The notes under the pieces were generated by a model, which worked only from the letters and a program-made list of their open reading frames with translations, did no database searches and was not told where the DNA came from. Below are positions 2-6,096 of a DNA stretch of 6,096 bases, in pieces. Position numbers and translations under genes: made by a program. The DNA lies in assembly GCF_000142905.1 (NCBI RefSeq), contig NW_013657623.1, positions 1 through 6,096 on the forward strand, read 5' to 3'. Source of the DNA: Thecamonas trahens ATCC 50062. Its lineage: Eukaryota > Protista > Apusomonadida. Every line of letters starts with the position of its first letter. Within the stretch, counting starts at the first letter, position 1.

Positions 2-145
2 AACGACGTCGGCCGTCTGATTGCTACCGCGCCAAACGCCGTAGACGTTGTTGGAGAAGGTAACGGCCGGGCTCTCCGGAAGCGTCTCGAGCGCATCCTC
101 GATCGAGTCAACAAAGCCGACGTGACCTTGATATTCAAAGTCCAT
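2..145 (-). CDS. Possible 5' part or exon of a divergently oriented gene running off the left edge (MDFEYQGHVGFVDSIEDALETLPESPAVTFSNNVYGVWRGSNQTADVV...)
   Basis: Minus frame is open from 247 to the window edge with an ATG at 145 and protein-like composition. No recognisable motif. Confidence 0.35.
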   Translation of the reverse strand, partial: MDFEYQGHVGFVDSIEDALETLPESPAVTFSNNVYGVWRGSNQTADVV

Positions 146-762
146 GATGGTTGTCAGCGCAGCTGTGCATGTATGTAAGGCGGCCTTGAACGTAGGCGAG
201 CTGTGGTTCTCGCCACATCGCACAGAAGGAACCGAACAAGGTGAGACTCAGCAATGCAAGCACCTCTATCCCACTCACAGATCAGAGCCCACTCACAGTC
301 GCAACCCGACGGAAGCAGCCACGTCTTGCCTCAATCACCCGATCGCCATCTCCTGGTCGGAACCCATTCTGCGACCGCTCTGCGCCCTCGCCCTCCACCA
401 CATGACTACCACGCACACTCTCATTCATCGAATGCGTTCATCCTATGCTGAAAATACCCGATCCCGTCTCGCTCTCGGAAGTCAAGCAGCATGAGGCTTG
501 GTTAGTACTGTGGTGGGGGACCACACGGGAATACCGAGTAACGCATTCTTTCTTCTTTTTGCCCAACTACACACCCTCCTTGCATGCATGCACCCACCCA
601 CCCTGGCCCCACCATCACCACATCAATCATTTCTCGTTCAATTAATCATGCCCAGCCCCATCAATTAACACTCGCCCGATATCCAAAAAATCGCCCAAAC
701 ACCACCTGTCGCCCTCGCCGTCACACTCACCGCACACTCCGCACACCCCTCTCACTGTGCCC

Positions 763-3700
763 ATGGACCCCGCTCCAGGGGGCACAGGGGACCCCCTGCG
801 CCCTGCACACACACCCGTGCAGCACAGGGGACCCCCCGCTCCCTGCACACGCACCAGTGCAGCAGGGTTCTGCCAAGCGCCCCCGCCCGCTGCTCACCGC
901 CAACGCCAGCTCGGCCAGCTCGGCCACCCCTTCCTCCGCAGTCCCCCAGAACATGCATATCGAAGCGACGTCATCGTCACCAGCCGGGCCGTCCTCCACC
1001 AAGTCATACGATGTCTTCCTCTGCCACGGCTCCAACGACAAGGGGCTCATGCTCTCGCTCCGCGACAAGCTCGTTGCCCTCGGTCTGCGCGTCTTTCTCG
1101 ACGTCAAGTCGCTCGACGCCATGATTGTCCAAGATCCCGCAGACTGCGCCCGGCTTGCCCGTGACTCACACGTTGTGGTCGTCGTTGTCTCAAAGTACTC
1201 GATCGTCACACGGTGGGCCATCGCAGAGGCCGACGCAGCCCTCGCTGATCCGACTTGCAAGGTCTTTCCGGTTTTTGCCGACGCTGAGCTCTCGCTCGAG
1301 ACCGTCTCGTCGCCGGCATGGCGTGACGGCCCGCGGGATGCCAGCCATCCTCTACTGGCGTACATGGCGGTGGCTTTCCCGCCGCAGATCCCGAACAACC
1401 GTCGACTCATGGAGCTGTGGGAACACGATGAACTCACGCCCGAGCTCAAAGTCGCCCGCATCGGCACTCTCTTCGCCCTCCTCGAGCGCGGCCTCGCTCC
1501 GTACTCGCCGGCTCGCGTTAGCGTGTTTTTAGATGGTCGACGATCTTGTTTTATCCGCATTCCAGGCCATTGTTCCCAGTTCACCCCTCCGCCCCTCACC
1601 CATGCCACCGCCACTCAATCCACCCGAGTACCACCCGCTCCCTGTTACTCGTGATGCGGTCATTAATGTCCTTCTTGGTTGCGAACAACGTCTCAGTCGT
1701 CGGTGTCAACGGGCTCGGCGGCGTCGGCAAGTCGTTCACTCGCAGCCGATGTCGCCATCCATCCCGCCATCACCTCGGTCTTCTCCGTCTTCTGGGCTCT
1801 CGCTTGGTGAGGACCAATACGTCCAACCCAGCTCTTGCCAGCCGCATGTCTTACTTTCTCAAGCAGGGTCTGAGCTGCACAGTCGATACTCAGGCCAACC
1901 TCAATGACCTCCAACCCATTCTTGCTGCCAAGACCCGGGCCCTCGCCAATGCCAGGACTCGCATTCTGCTCATCCTCGACGACGCGTGGGACACCCGCCA
2001 GGCCTCCGTATTCGCCAACCACATCGCAGCCCCGCATGCCGTCCTCGTCACCTCGCGCAACGCCGCCTTTGCTACCAACATCGCCACTTCCATTGAGCTC
2101 GGTACGTTTGACACGGACGACGCTGCTGTTGTCCTTCGCAACTACCTCGCCAAGGGCTCACCTGAGTGGGCAAATACCCTTGCACTCAACGATTCCCGCA
2201 TCGTCTCCCTCGCGACCTTTTGCCGCGGCCATGCCCTCGCCCTTGCCGTCCTTGGCTCGTCCATATCTGGCGAGGCTGCACTTGACGCCGCTGTTGAGGA
2301 CGCTGCAGATGCAACTGAGCTTGCCATGGATGAGCACCGCGATGGTTGCGGCGGATCGGACGCCAAGTACGCCCACATCTTTGACATCATCACTTGGACC
2401 CTCGGCGGTGCCATCCCCAAGCATGTCCGCAAGGTGGCGCTGACTATTTACGCCATGCTCGCCGTCTTTCCATCAGACGCGCCCATCGACGTCGCCAACT
2501 TCCGCTCCGCGATCGACGCAAGCAATATCAAGTTTGCTAGGGCCCTCGATGCCCTCGCCAACACGTCGTTGCTGCGCGTCGTTGCCACGGATGGCGCACC
2601 ATCACTGTAATCGAGATGCACGNNNNNNNNNNNNNNNNNNNNNNNNNNNNNNNNNNNNNNNNNNNNNNNNNNNNNNNNNNNNNNNNNNNNNNNNNNNNNN
2701 NNNNNNNNNNNNNNNNNNNNNNNNNNNNNNNNNNNNNNNNNNNNNNNNNNNNNNNNNNNNNNNNNNNNNNNNNNNNNNNNNNNNNNNNNNNNNNNNNNNN
2801 NNNNNNNNNNNNNNNNNNNNNNNNNNNNNNNNNNNNNNNNNNNNNNNNNNNNNNNNNNNNNNNNNNNNNNNNNNNNNNNNNNNNNNNNNNNNNNNNNNNN
2901 NNNNNNNNNNNNNNNNNNNNNNNNNNNNNNNNNNNNNNNNNNNNNNNNNNNNNNNNNNNNNNNNNNNNNNNNNNNNNNNNNNNNNNNNNNNNNNNNNNNN
3001 NNNNNNNNNNNNNNNNNNNNNNNNNNNNNNNNNNNNNNNNNNNNNNNNNNNNNNNNNNNNNNNNNNNNNNNNNNNNNNNNNNNNNNNNNNNNNNNNNNNN
3101 NNNNNNNNNNNNNNNNNNNNNNNNNNNNNNNNNNNNNNNNNNNNNNNNNNNNNNNNNNNNNNNNNTTCGCTTTGTTGGCTTGTCCGGCAAAGTCATCAAC
3201 ATCGGTGGCTCGCTGGTTGCTGGTGGATGTAGGAACAATGTGGACGTACTTGACGTGCTAACTGTGAACGCGTGGAGGTGCTGGAGGGCCACACCGACTG
3301 TGTGAATGGTGTTCTTGCGCTGCCGAGTGCGGATGGCCAGCTGCCTGTCCTGGTCTCGTGGTCGGAGGACAACACGATCCGGGTGTGGCATGCTGCGGAC
3401 GACGGGACGGGCGCCATGCGGTACACCGCGGACACTGCCTCCTGCGAGGTGCTGAAGGGCCACACCAGCCTTGTGCGGGGTGTGATTGCGCTGCCGAGTG
3501 CGGATGGCCAGCTGCCTGTCCTGGTCTCGTGGTCGGAGGACAAGACGATCCGGGTGTGGCATCCTGCGGACGACGGGACGGGCGCCATGTGGTACACCGC
3601 GGACAGCGCCTCCTGTGAGGTGCTGGAGGGTCACACCGGTGATGTGAATGGTGTGATTGCGCTGCCGAGTGCAGATAGCCAGCTGCCTGTCCTGGTCTCG

Positions 3701-5332
3701 TGGTCGTGGGGCAACACGATCCGGGTGTGGCATCCTGCGGACGATGGGACGGGCCCCATGCGGTACACCGCGGACAGTGCCTTCTGTGAGGTGCTGGAGG
3801 GCCATGCCAATATTGTGGAGGGTGTGATTGCGCTGCCGAGTGCGGATGGCCAGCTGCCTGTCCTGGTCTCGCGGTCTGGCGACCGGACGATCCGGGTGTG
3901 GCATCCTGCGGACGACGGGACGGGCCCCATGCGGTACACCGCGCACAGTGCCTCCTGTGAGGTGCTGGAGGGCCACACCAAGTATGTAGAGGGCGTGGTT
4001 ACACTGCCGAGTGCGGATGGCCAGCTTCCTGTCCTGGTCTCGTGGTCAAGGGACAGGACGATCCGGGTGTGGCATCCTGCGGACGACGGGACGGGCGCCA
4101 TGCGGTACACCACAGACACTGCCTTCTGTGAGGTGCTGGAGGGCCACACCGACGATGTTCGGGGTGTGATTGCGCTGCCGAGTGCGGTTGGCCAGCTGCC
4201 TGCTCTGGTCTCGTGGTCGAGGGACAGGACGATCCGGGTGTGGCATGCTGCGGATGATGGGATGGGGACCATTCGGTACACCGCGGACAGTGCCTCCTTT
4301 GAGGTGCTGGATGACCACACTAACAATGTGCGAGGCGTGATTGCGCTATCGAGTGCGGATGGTCGGCTGCCTGTCCTCATCTCGTGGTCGTGGGACAGGA
4401 CGATCCGGGTGTGGCATCCTGCGGACGACGGGACGGGTACCATGCGGTACACCGCGGGCAATGCCTCCTGTGAGGTGTTGGAGGGCCACACCGGTTATGT
4501 AGGCAGCTTGATTGCGCTGCCAGGTGCGGATGGCCAACTGCCTGTCCTGGTCTCGCGGTCTGGCGACCGGACGATCCGGGTGTGGCATCCTGCGGACGAC
4601 GGGACGGGCGCCATGCGGTACACCGCGCACAGTGCCTCCTGTGAGGTGCTGGAGAGCCACACCGATGGTCTTCGAGGCCTGATTGCGCTGCCGAGTGCGG
4701 ATGGCCAGCTGCCTGTCCTGGTCTCGTGGTCGAGAGACAGAACGATCCGGGTGTGGCATCCTGCGGACGACAGGATGGGCGCCATGCGGTACACCGCGCA
4801 CAGTGCCTCCTGTGAGGTGCTGGAGGGCCACACCGACGGTCTTCGAGGCCTGATTGCGCTGCCGAGTGCGGATGGCCAGCTGCCTGTCCTGGTCTCGTGG
4901 TCGAGAGACAGAACGATCCGGGTGTGGCATCCTGCGGACGACGGGATGGGTGCCATGCGGTACACTGCGGACAGTGCCTTCTTTGAGGTGCTGAAGGGTC
5001 ACACCCGCAATGTGCAGAGTGTGATTGCGCTCCCGAGTGTGGATGGCCAGCTGCCTGTTCTGATCTCTCGCACATTCTCGTACGAGACGTTCCAGTGGCA
5101 CCCTACCCCAACCGGCTACATCCTCCACGCCCGCCACGCCCCTACCTTCTGGTCCCCTCCCTCCTACTGGTTCCTCGCCCCCCACTCTACCTCCACTCAC
5201 TCATGCAGCCACACCACCCGCATCACGATCGCCAACCACGCCGGCCTCTCCATCCCCCACCCCTCCGACCCCAATCGCCTCCTCACCGTATTCTCCAATC
5301 GCCCTCCCGCCATCCTCCGCCGCCATCCATAA
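763..5332 (+). CDS. TIR - NB-ARC (STAND/APAF-1-type NTPase) - WD40 NLR-like protein, reconstructed across several frameshifts and an N gap (could be a pseudogene)
   Basis: TIR motifs, all NB-ARC motifs and WD40 repeats are collinear on one strand in canonical NLR order. Frame switches fall at ~823, ~1535, ~1680, ~1735, ~1796, ~1815, ~2600 and ~3270. Start is either ATG 763 (CCATGG context, needs a frameshift at ~823) or ATG 953. Stop is TAA 5330-5332. Confidence 0.75.
782..861 (+). repeat. 2 x 40-bp direct tandem repeat
   Basis: gcacaggggaccccctgcgccctgcacacacacccgtgca (782-821) versus gcacaggggaccccccgctccctgcacacgcaccagtgca (822-861), 36/40 identical. Confidence 0.9.
953..1654 (+). CDS. 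TIR domain-containing segment (TIR_2-like; core ~1004-1276), N-terminal part of the NLR-like gene
   Basis: Translation shows YDVFLCHGSNDK (box 1), LVALGLRVFLD, SHVVVVVVSKYS, RWAIAEA (W-x-x-x-E, Glu codon 1226-1228) and KVFPVF in typical TIR order. The last ~40 codons of this ORF are probably out of frame. Confidence 0.88.
   Translation: MHIEATSSSPAGPSSTKSYDVFLCHGSNDKGLMLSLRDKLVALGLRVFLDVKSLDAMIVQDPADCARLARDSHVVVVVVSKYSIVTRWAIAEADAALADPTCKVFPVFADAELSLETVSSPAWRDGPRDASHPLLAYMAVAFPPQIPNNRRLMELWEHDELTPELKVARIGTLFALLERGLAPYSPARVSVFLDGRRSCFIRIPGHCSQFTPPPLTHATATQSTRVPPAPCYS
1681..2622 (+). CDS. NB-ARC / AP-ATPase (STAND) nucleotide-binding domain segment
   Basis: Walker A VVGVNGLGGVGKS (1696-1734), Walker B ILLILDDAWD (1963-1992), sensor-1/RNBS-B VLVTSRN (2041-2061), GLPL-like CRGHALAL (2221-2244), winged-helix-like LAVFPSDAPI...ALDALANTSLL, and ATG CAC G = MH(D) at 2616-2622 in an adjacent frame. 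Confidence 0.88.
2623..3165. other. Assembly gap (543 N)
   Basis: Run of N characters between the MH(D) motif and the WD40 region. Confidence 1.
3272..5332 (+). CDS. WD40-repeat beta-propeller segment (C-terminal sensor domain of the NLR-like gene)
   Basis: 686-codon uninterrupted ORF with 11 repeats of the form EVLEGHT..V.GVIAL....LVSWS.D.TIRVW, retaining the GH, S, D and W WD40 signature (tetrad D absent in units 3 and 11). The GTG at 3272 is unlikely to be a true start, since a degenerate blade (SLVAGGCRNNVDVLDV) lies just upstream in another frame. Confidence 0.92.
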   Translation: MEVLEGHTDCVNGVLALPSADGQLPVLVSWSEDNTIRVWHAADDGTGAMRYTADTASCEVLKGHTSLVRGVIALPSADGQLPVLVSWSEDKTIRVWHPADDGTGAMWYTADSASCEVLEGHTGDVNGVIALPSADSQLPVLVSWSWGNTIRVWHPADDGTGPMRYTADSAFCEVLEGHANIVEGVIALPSADGQLPVLVSRSGDRTIRVWHPADDGTGPMRYTAHSASCEVLEGHTKYVEGVVTLPSADGQLPVLVSWSRDRTIRVWHPADDGTGAMRYTTDTAFCEVLEGHTDDVRGVIALPSAVGQLPALVSWSRDRTIRVWHAADDGMGTIRYTADSASFEVLDDHTNNVRGVIALSSADGRLPVLISWSWDRTIRVWHPADDGTGTMRYTAGNASCEVLEGHTGYVGSLIALPGADGQLPVLVSRSGDRTIRVWHPADDGTGAMRYTAHSASCEVLESHTDGLRGLIALPSADGQLPVLVSWSRDRTIRVWHPADDRMGAMRYTAHSASCEVLEGHTDGLRGLIALPSADGQLPVLVSWSRDRTIRVWHPADDGMGAMRYTADSAFFEVLKGHTRNVQSVIALPSVDGQLPVLISRTFSYETFQWHPTPTGYILHARHAPTFWSPPSYWFLAPHSTSTHSCSHTTRITIANHAGLSIPHPSDPNRLLTVFSNRPPAILRRHP
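3275..5103 (+). repeat. Coding tandem array: 10 full 171-bp units plus one degenerate 11th unit
   Basis: Unit starts (GAG GTG CTG/TTG) at 3275, 3446, 3617, 3788, 3959, 4130, 4301, 4472, 4643, 4814 and 4985, an exact 171-bp period with no indels between units. Confidence 0.97.
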
Positions 5333-5598
5333 CACCTCCGCCACTCCCACCGCCTTTACTCCCCTGAGCACCGCGCCCGCAACCTCGCCGCCCCCAGCAC
5401 ATCCACAGCCTCCTGCGCCATGGGCCTCACCAGCGGATCGACCGACCAAGACTGGTGAATCCTGCACAGGAAAGAATGGGATTGACAAGAAGAAGACCAG
5501 TGGCGAACCAGGTAGCAGTATCCTTGGCCATAGTCTACTCCGTTGGGGGGCGAGAGGTGTGGCCAGGTTGTGATGGGCCGTGCTTGCTGCGCTGATTG

Positions 5599-5949
5599 CT
5601 AGCGCTCTGGGAAGCTACACAGCTGGCACATCTGCTGAGAAAGTGCCGGCATCAAAGGCCTGAACCCCTCGAGCAGCAGCCATCCGATGCTGCCTCCTCC
5701 GTCGGTGACTCCGTCGCCTTCCTCAACCGCGGCCAAGCAGCCTACCAAGCGGTGTCTGAGCTTGAAGTGTCCTGGTTTGACCTCGATCGCGTCCTCGATC
5801 GCGTCCTCGAGCCCGCACACGCCGTACTCATCGCCCAGCACACACACGGCCTCGGCCTCCTCCTGACGGTGGCTATGGGCGCAGACGGTAGCCACAAAGC
5901 GAGGGGCAGCCACGAGGCCGTGCGCAGTGTGACAGAGCTTAGCGCCCAC
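5599..5949 (-). CDS. Hypothetical ORF or gene fragment, convergent with the NLR-like gene
   Basis: 116-codon ORF with an acidic, protein-like core (EEAEAVCVLGDEYGVCGLEDAIEDAIEVKPGHFKL). No recognisable domain and no ATG start. Confidence 0.25.
   Translation of the reverse strand: MGAKLCHTAHGLVAAPRFVATVCAHSHRQEEAEAVCVLGDEYGVCGLEDAIEDAIEVKPGHFKLRHRLVGCLAAVEEGDGVTDGGGSIGWLLLEGFRPLMPALSQQMCQLCSFPER
5781..5810. repeat. 2.5 x 12-bp tandem repeat (cctcgatcgcgt)
   Basis: cctcgatcgcgt cctcgatcgcgt cctcga; encodes EDAI-EDAI-E on the minus strand. Confidence 0.85.
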
Positions 5950-6096
5950 GCCACCGTCCCGGCGGGGCTTGTCGTCCTGCTCGGCCTTGCCTCGTGCGTC
6001 GTCGGCATCCCGGGCTACTTCCCAGGCAGCGACACGATCTGCTGGCGCCGGAGACCTTTGCGCGTTACGGCGGGTTGTACAAGCTGTACCGGATCA

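Follow-up and report, generated by a model that had tools for sequence, protein, structure and literature searches.

The stretch of DNA analysed here, referred to throughout as the window, is the entire 6,096-nt scaffold C57 in the assembly of the marine apusomonad flagellate Thecamonas trahens ATCC 50062 (28.7 Mb in 131 scaffolds; other scaffolds carrying paralogues are likewise given by their C numbers), and it holds a candidate NLR-like receptor locus in which a TIR domain, an NB-ARC domain and an array of WD40 repeats follow one another. The three lie in three open reading frames (ORFs) of the plus strand, TIR_2 in ORF 584-1654 (Pfam 1.3e-9, 39 bits against a cut-off of 28), NB-ARC (PF00931) in ORF 1546-2610 (2.3e-10, 40.6 bits against 23.5) and WD40 in ORF 3272-5332 (1.9e-43), and all exceed the curated Pfam cut-offs in the order TIR, NB-ARC, WD40. 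A sequence-only reading of this DNA had recognised the three domains in that order on a single strand, had suspected a microbial-eukaryote host and had proposed a profile search as a check; the profiles and the identity of the host bear it out on each count. The broken pieces of the window were searched and folded separately, and intact paralogues were used by reference. The parts of the receptor locus are as follows.

953 to 955, plus strand: probable start codon (MHIEATSSS...), the start used in the NCBI paralogue models P0001 and P0002, which have the same first residues
1007 to 1492, plus strand: TIR domain in frame 2 (Pfam TIR_2, PF13676, 1.3e-9; AlphaFold2 predicted local distance difference test, pLDDT, 79.8)
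1226 to 1228, plus strand: GAG codon for the Glu of a W-x-x-x-E motif in helix alphaC, aligned with the AbTIR and BtpA/TcpB chains
1623 to 2622, plus strand: NB-ARC module (Pfam 2.3e-10)
1711 to 1734, plus strand: P-loop GLGGVGKS, fitting GxxxxGK[ST]
1963 to 1989, plus strand: Walker B ILLILDDAW, fitting hhhhDD
2616 to 2622, plus strand: MH(D) motif at the gap edge, ATG CAC G in the true frame, its Asp codon cut by the N-run
2623 to 3165, no strand: N-run of 543 nt, in paralogues 181 codons of helical linker from the MHD motif to the first WD blade
3166 to 3271, plus strand: pre-array segment (FRFVGLSGKVINIGGSLVAGGCRNNVDVLDV...) in frame 3, 81-84% identical to paralogues, with a one-base deletion at 3263/3264
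3275 to 5071, plus strand: WD40 array in frame 2, made up of ten full 57-codon repeats (3275-4984) plus part of an eleventh
5072 to 5332, plus strand: C-terminal tail and stop codon (5330-5332), common to C59 and C64

Continuity across the N-run was examined first. The spacing of the flanking motifs is exactly 543 nt in five of five paralogues (C59, C64, C22, C97 and C67), the same as the N-run of the window. The left flank ends in ...ACT GTA ATC GAG ATG CAC G (TVIEMH-), where the NB-ARC winged helix has its MHD motif, and the right flank opens with ...TTC GCT TTG..., the (R)FRF segment ahead of the first blade. Because the N-run has the length of the paralogue spacing, a whole number of codons, and both its flanks are in frame 3, the NB-ARC and WD40 parts are collinear and in frame. 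The TAA at 2608-2610 that closes the NB-ARC ORF lies outside the true frame, arising from a base missing after 2596. Uninterrupted single ORFs, with no N-run inside the gene, occur at C59 (1,622 residues), C22 (1,595) and C64 (1,415), and in the C59 protein Pfam places TIR_2 at residues 73-165, NB-ARC at 284-490 and WD40 at about 800 to 1,560; the NB-ARC domains of the intact paralogues score 52-59 bits. The TIR-NB-ARC-WD40 architecture exists as one gene in T. trahens. A terminator or promoter between NB-ARC and WD40 had been named beforehand as the observation that would count against a single gene; the NB-ARC-to-WD40 interval of the gap-free paralogues contains no stop, terminator or promoter, and in the window the gap is of paralogue length and the frame is kept. 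In this assembly N-runs seem to stand for consensus of known length that was masked or left uncalled, and not for scaffold gaps of estimated size.

Genome searches gave 36 matches to the NB-ARC piece and 33 to the TIR piece, which with matches to the flanking DNA resolve into about 20 loci, the paralogue count that the sequence-only reading had suggested making. Judged by these matches, the window is one of about 20 paralogous loci and not a unique gene. The loci are 85-99% identical to one another. Along the unit, the window is between 78 and 99% identical to whichever paralogue matches it best, and that partner switches, also away from the gap. Because the best-matching paralogue changes along the unit, the family is a mosaic. 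This bears on the question of a scaffold chimera, in which the TIR-NB-ARC half of one paralogue and the WD40 half of another would have been joined by mate pairs across the N-run. The high identity among so many loci, many of them at scaffold ends or on tiny scaffolds, would favour such a misjoin, as would the different best partners to the left (C38, C97 and C59) and right (C22 and C97) of the gap. However, the partner shifts also where no gap exists, so mosaicism is a property of the family, the exact N-run length and the frame fit continuity, and gap-free genes of the same architecture are present in the genome; we regard a chimera as clearly improbable.

As assembled, the window copy has no single uninterrupted reading frame from start to stop, being interrupted by seven one-base breaks as well as by the 543-nt N-run. 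The breaks, and a duplication in the leader, are the following.

1526 T, 1679 T, 1735 T, 1794 G and 1814 C, plus strand: five +1 insertions, from nucleotide alignment with C59, C64, C22 and C97
2596 to 2597, plus strand: one-base deletion relative to all paralogues, yielding the false stop TAA 2608-2610
before 3264, plus strand: one-base deletion, from alignment with paralogues
782 to 864, plus strand: 40-nt tandem duplication in the leader (Tandem Repeats Finder, period 40, 2.1 copies), shifting the frame between ATG 763 and ATG 953

All seven frame-breaking changes are homopolymer runs longer or shorter by one base, and there is one further in-frame +3 insertion relative to four paralogues. 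The five insertions cluster within 289 nt (1526-1814), taking the frame through 2>3>1>2>3>1, and the N-run is 27 nt away from one deletion and 98 nt from the other. If seven events struck 3.8 kb at random, five would share a single 289-nt interval with a probability of ~4e-5, or ~6e-4 allowing for ~13 such intervals. No in-frame nonsense substitution is found in any readable piece of the window copy. This clustering and the adjacency to the N-run point to locally poor sequence over gradual decay, and from the pattern of the changes the breaks are most likely errors of sequence quality, at odds of about three to two (60:40) against real decay. Introns as a source of the frame changes were ruled out, the paralogues being uninterrupted at these points and the differences being single bases. 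The sequence-only reading had described a gene hidden by being split by the ORF caller: the receptor is present and its domains do fall in three ORFs, but the caller alone is not responsible, as the assembled copy has seven frame breaks, and this copy could be a pseudogene or poorly read.

Were the seven indels and the 40-nt duplication real, the window copy would be a decayed pseudogene giving no full-length protein, and we hold this to be a serious possibility, though short of even odds. Seven breaks fall in 3.8 kb of readable coding sequence, the duplication is not seen in C59 or C22, and other copies are broken too, for example C71, and C97 and C22 with array ends that are out of frame. 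Pseudogenes are, moreover, common in large receptor families. Against decay stand the lack of in-frame nonsense substitutions and the restriction of all breaks to single bases in homopolymers, the concentration of five of them in 289 nt with the other two close to the N-run, which fits local low read quality better, and the 99% identity of the window TIR to several copies. The 40-nt duplication is relevant only if translation begins at ATG 763, not at ATG 953; in paralogues the frame is open from the equivalent of ATG 763 into the TIR, and either start could be used. At the position of the 40-nt unit the C64 leader has a different insertion, of 27 nt. At the other end of the gene, the NCBI model of C59 treats the tail as intronic, splicing it out behind ...GQLPVL and closing with another short exon (window region 5060-5460).

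In its AlphaFold2 model the TIR adopts a flavodoxin-like, plant-TNL-like TIR fold. The best Foldseek matches in the PDB are the TIRs of plant NLRs (RUN1, RPV1, RPS4, SNC1 and Roq1, E ~1e-6); probability is 1.00 to plant and bacterial TIRs, with SARM1, AbTIR and other bacterial TIRs ranked lower. The window TIR aligns weakly with BtpA and AbTIR, and W-A-I-A-E stands opposite their W-x-x-x-E, the Glu of which we take to be the catalytic (NADase) residue. This Glu (E92) is one of nine columns that do not vary among 16 TIR paralogues from T. trahens, which are 27-97% identical. By analogy, the TIR is predicted to be of NADase type and would cleave NAD+. Two TIR subtypes, ~43% identical, are found on NB-ARC-WD40 bodies that are 70-85% identical (C22:455972, C97:6088, C67:160245, C17:2255 and C125:2316), and the occurrence of two subtypes on such alike bodies suggests swapping of effector domains within the family. 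The same type of TIR is present in T. trahens on TKL kinases and in an ankyrin (Ank)-TIR-NB-ARC gene. The latter, at C70:66500-71500 (L051), has an ankyrin-TIR-NB-ARC ORF at 2311-4992 on the minus strand and a separate minus-strand ORF at 576-2249 with non-homogenised WD40 repeats; this divergent relative may be a superfamily member that is older and lacks hypervariability.

The NB-ARC module has, beyond its P-loop and Walker B, the further motifs LVTSR and, in place of GLPL, CRGHALAL; where the window is cut at the MHD site the paralogues read VIEMHDLHLEY. When a paralogue was searched with phmmer against the PDB, the best matches of solved structure were the plant helper NLRs NRC2 and NRC1 (3e-8), which correspond motif by motif. 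The proposal that the protein is NLR-like, i.e. of the STAND class, is upheld by the NB-ARC profile, the P-loop, Walker B and the MHD motif.

The WD40 array is highly regular, Tandem Repeats Finder detecting a 171-nt unit in 10.5 copies at 3275-5067 with 86% matches and no indels. The C67 ORF (L015) keeps the repeat register through three N-runs. Mean amino-acid identity between the window repeats is 78% (range 72-91%), or 83% without five variable positions. Family-wide repeat statistics were drawn from 56 clean units of seven loci, in which amino-acid entropy reaches 2.5-3.1 bits at codons 8, 9, 11, 31 and 33; among the remaining 52 codons the highest value is 1.7 bits, at codon 54, and none of the other 51 exceeds 1.1 bits. 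The five-residue combinations are almost all different (54 distinct in 56 units). Mean per-codon nonsynonymous difference (pN) is 0.58 at the five variable codons and 0.06 elsewhere, and the mean synonymous difference (pS) of the repeat scaffold is 0.12. The variable codons differ at bases 1 and 2 and for the most part keep base 3 constant; codon 9, for instance, is NNT in 46 of 56 family units and in 11 of 11 window units. Variation of this kind fits selection for amino-acid change, and local hypermutation would not produce it; because the ratio of nonsynonymous to synonymous change (dN/dS) is saturated within the variable codons, the argument for selection rests on their pN set against scaffold pS. 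With the five codons set aside, nucleotide identity of the units is 93.9% within loci and 92.5% between loci, and the repeats are evidently shared across the family, since for 33 of the 56 units the nearest neighbour belongs to a different locus. The sequence-only reading had inferred a sensor both homogenised and hypervariable, which agrees well with 92-94% scaffold identity and variation focused on five codons.

The AlphaFold2 model of the array (pLDDT 77.8) is all-beta, with four strands and an extra hairpin (positions 40-50) in each unit, the hairpin accounting for the unusual 57-residue repeat length. In the secondary structure of the model codons 8, 9 and 11 fall in the D-A loop and where strand A begins, and the B-C turn contains codons 31 and 33, so that by standard WD40 topology the five variable codons would be located on the top, ligand-binding face of the propeller. 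The best Foldseek match of the array is 2ymu, a 'highly repetitive propeller' (9e-24). Structures of Rsa4/Nle1 are also among the WD40 matches, and the paralogue proteins carry public NCBI/UniRef names such as 'WD repeat protein', 'ribosome assembly protein 4' and 'NB-ARC domain-containing protein', from which one might take the window gene for an ordinary housekeeping WD-repeat protein. This is highly improbable, as the names reflect generic WD40 similarity, the TIR and NB-ARC domains exceed their Pfam cut-offs, the MIDAS-interacting N-terminal domain of Rsa4 is not present, and the family is multicopy and species-specific with hypervariable repeats.

Several known systems share parts of this organisation. 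As in the plant TNLs (RPP1, ROQ1, RPS4 and RUN1), an N-terminal TIR precedes an NB-ARC that has the P-loop, Walker B, 'TSR' and MHD motifs, Glu occupies the catalytic position, and plant NLR structures are the best matches of both TIR model and NB-ARC. Unlike in the TNLs, the sensor of the window is a WD40 propeller and not a leucine-rich repeat (LRR) domain with C-JID (Pfam found no LRR), identity is only ~20-30%, and the gene belongs to a heterotrophic flagellate, a relative of Opisthokonta. The HNWD proteins of fungi have very similar WD40 repeats with few variable positions on the interaction face, shared among family members by concerted evolution (PMC4986451), and the T. trahens family resembles these HNWD/NWD proteins (Podospora HET-E along with HET-D and HET-R) in combining a STAND NTPase with alike WD40 repeats, focused variation and sharing between paralogues, and in that repeat number differs among paralogues. 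It departs from HET-E/D/R in having NB-ARC not NACHT and TIR not HET (Pfam found neither HET nor NACHT), and repeats of 57 residues with an extra beta-hairpin where the fungal repeats have 42. With Apaf-1, Dark and CED-4 it has in common the succession of NB-ARC, helical domain and WD40 propeller sensor, and activation by oligomerisation would be expected by analogy; it differs from the Apaf-1 type in having TIR instead of CARD, in being a multicopy hypervariable family of about 20 loci in place of a single conserved gene, and in its low identity. Bacterial TIR- or SIR2-STAND proteins with WD40 or tetratricopeptide repeat (TPR) sensors (AP-ATPase, Avs-like) have the same three-part architecture, and the best structural match of the array is the cyanobacterial highly repetitive WD40 protein (PDB 2ymu). 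Unlike the bacterial STANDs, the T. trahens family is nuclear-encoded, beside 5S rRNA genes on about 20 scaffolds.

The family could be real and yet serve a different function, either as a conspecific allorecognition or mating/fusion system or through a TIR that acts as an adaptor recruiting other TIR proteins. In function, homogenised hypervariable WD40 arrays find their nearest counterpart in fungal heterokaryon incompatibility (PMC4986451), which would favour a conspecific role. T. trahens has many other TIR proteins, including the TIR-carrying TKL kinases, that could be partners of an adaptor. An adaptor or other role sits less well with the invariance of the Glu at the catalytic position in 16 diverged paralogues, and with best structural matches that are enzymatically active plant TIRs. 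We know of no documented cell fusion or allorecognition in Thecamonas, which counts against the conspecific alternative. Taken together, another function of this sort seems unlikely, although less so than a chimeric scaffold.

Relatives outside the species are distant. An exhaustive phmmer search of 1.84 billion representatives returned 887 proteins at E <= 0.001 and seven at E <= 1e-30, six of which are T. trahens proteins or family fragments and the seventh the metagenome protein P0014 (1.8e-34); a word-indexed protein search gave only T. trahens paralogues and one pine TNL. The nearest outsiders, ~30% identical, are a TIR-NB-ARC-LRR protein (P0014), two TIR-NB-ARC proteins (P0020 and P0024), and NB-ARC-TPR and NB-ARC-LRR proteins, joined by a TIR-NB-ARC-FGE-sulfatase, many metagenome NB-ARC-WD40 proteins and a Pirellulales SIR2-NB-ARC, with the next-nearest NB-ARC relatives at 27-33% identity. 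No close homologue is bacterial, and hence nothing points to a recent transfer. The TIR-NB-ARC-LRR gene of P0014 lies at 2251-5478 of ENA ERZ27290035 k119_959857 (L049) and is 34% identical to the family, and the gene next to it matches, along its entire length, a T. trahens gene at 53% identity. By sequence similarity this contig is probably from a related protist, likely an apusomonad. No description of the family was found in the literature on Thecamonas NB-ARC, TIR or NLR proteins or on TIR-NB-ARC-WD40, where the Acanthamoeba genome paper alone contains both 'Thecamonas' and 'NB-ARC', in unrelated passages. The sequence-only reading had cautioned that TIR-STAND-WD40 proteins exist in prokaryotes, a proviso that proves apt: bacteria have the three-part architecture, fungi show the behaviour of the sensor, and what appears new, as far as could be seen, is the combination of domains, the 57-residue repeat and the host lineage.

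The best explanation of these observations, to which we give a probability of roughly 0.7, is that the window is a locus of a T. trahens-specific, NLR-like STAND family with the organisation TIR, NB-ARC, helical linker and WD40 propeller, and the breaks in this copy are, from their sequence context, probably artefacts of assembly quality. Several points weigh against it. The assembled copy does carry seven frame breaks, the extra 40-nt copy (~803-842) is not in C59 or C22 and is atypical of sequencing error, and the window has ATC, not GTC, at the annotated 3' splice donor of the paralogue. The 543-nt spacing is common to all paralogues, so joined halves of two copies would look equally collinear. 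The window repeats, at 78% amino-acid identity, fall below the about 85% typical of fungal HNWD repeats, and dN/dS inside the five codons is 0.58, a value made uninformative by saturated pS. What is proposed on NADase activity, on oligomerisation, and on the ligand and biological role is by analogy, and to our knowledge close relatives of the receptor family have never been studied.

On the model of plant TNL resistosomes, Apaf-1, bacterial TIR-STAND/Avs and fungal HET-E/D/R, a receptor of the proposed family would bind a non-self or altered-self ligand at the variable face of its propeller. Binding would free the ADP-locked NB-ARC for nucleotide exchange, the receptor would then oligomerise via the NB-ARC, and the clustered TIRs would consume NAD+ or produce a nucleotide signal, with cell arrest or death as the outcome. 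The trigger might be a virus, an intracellular bacterium or a conspecific cell. For the window gene itself we infer that it is transcribed as one unit, that its TIR is an NADase and that it acts in immunity or cell death.

The remainder of the window holds the following features.

2 to 145, minus strand: short ORF diverging from the receptor gene
430 to 549, plus strand: 5S rRNA gene, full length (Rfam RF00001, 104.9 bits, E 5.6e-23)
5599 to 6090, minus strand: flanking ORF

The 5S rRNA gene lies ~400 nt upstream of the receptor ATG, within the duplicated unit, and the ORFs called at 144-494 and 445-645 are translations through the 5S region, not genes. At least 11 of the 24 5S genes detected in the genome sit upstream of a family copy, about half thus being linked to the family. 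The diverging short ORF also belongs to the duplicated unit, reaching 105 residues in C59 (MDFE..., L012 655-972, minus strand); Pfam searches gave no match to it or to the ORF at 5599-6090. At least 12 copies (C59, C64, C22, C17, C71, C49, C79, C39, C67, C70, C38 and C125) have their 5' end turned towards a nearby scaffold end, 0.1-13 kb away. None of the telomere repeats TTAGGG, TTTAGGG and TTGGGG was found in the scaffold ends examined. The placement may reflect a location at chromosome ends, or breaks of the assembly at the shared upstream repeat.

Apusomonads branch next to Opisthokonta. A broader proposal, tentative and rather doubtful at present, is that a unicellular relative of animals and fungi keeps a germline-diversified TIR-NB-ARC repertoire of about 20 copies, placed near scaffold ends and each lying in a unit with a 5S rRNA gene, which would exchange WD40 cassettes and be selected for new combinations of binding loops, and that a sister lineage pairs TIR-NB-ARC with LRRs. 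If this is true, TNL-like receptors and HET-E-like sensor diversification would not be inventions of plants and fungi, being instead older or repeatedly assembled in eukaryotic cell-autonomous immunity. Much is known of NLRs with rapidly diversifying sensors from plants, animals and fungi, and by now from bacteria, but almost nothing from free-living protists. An apusomonad TIR-NB-ARC family with a fungal-style WD40 sensor would offer a testable case for the age of such cell-autonomous immunity, and for how receptor repertoires diversify in a single-celled eukaryote.

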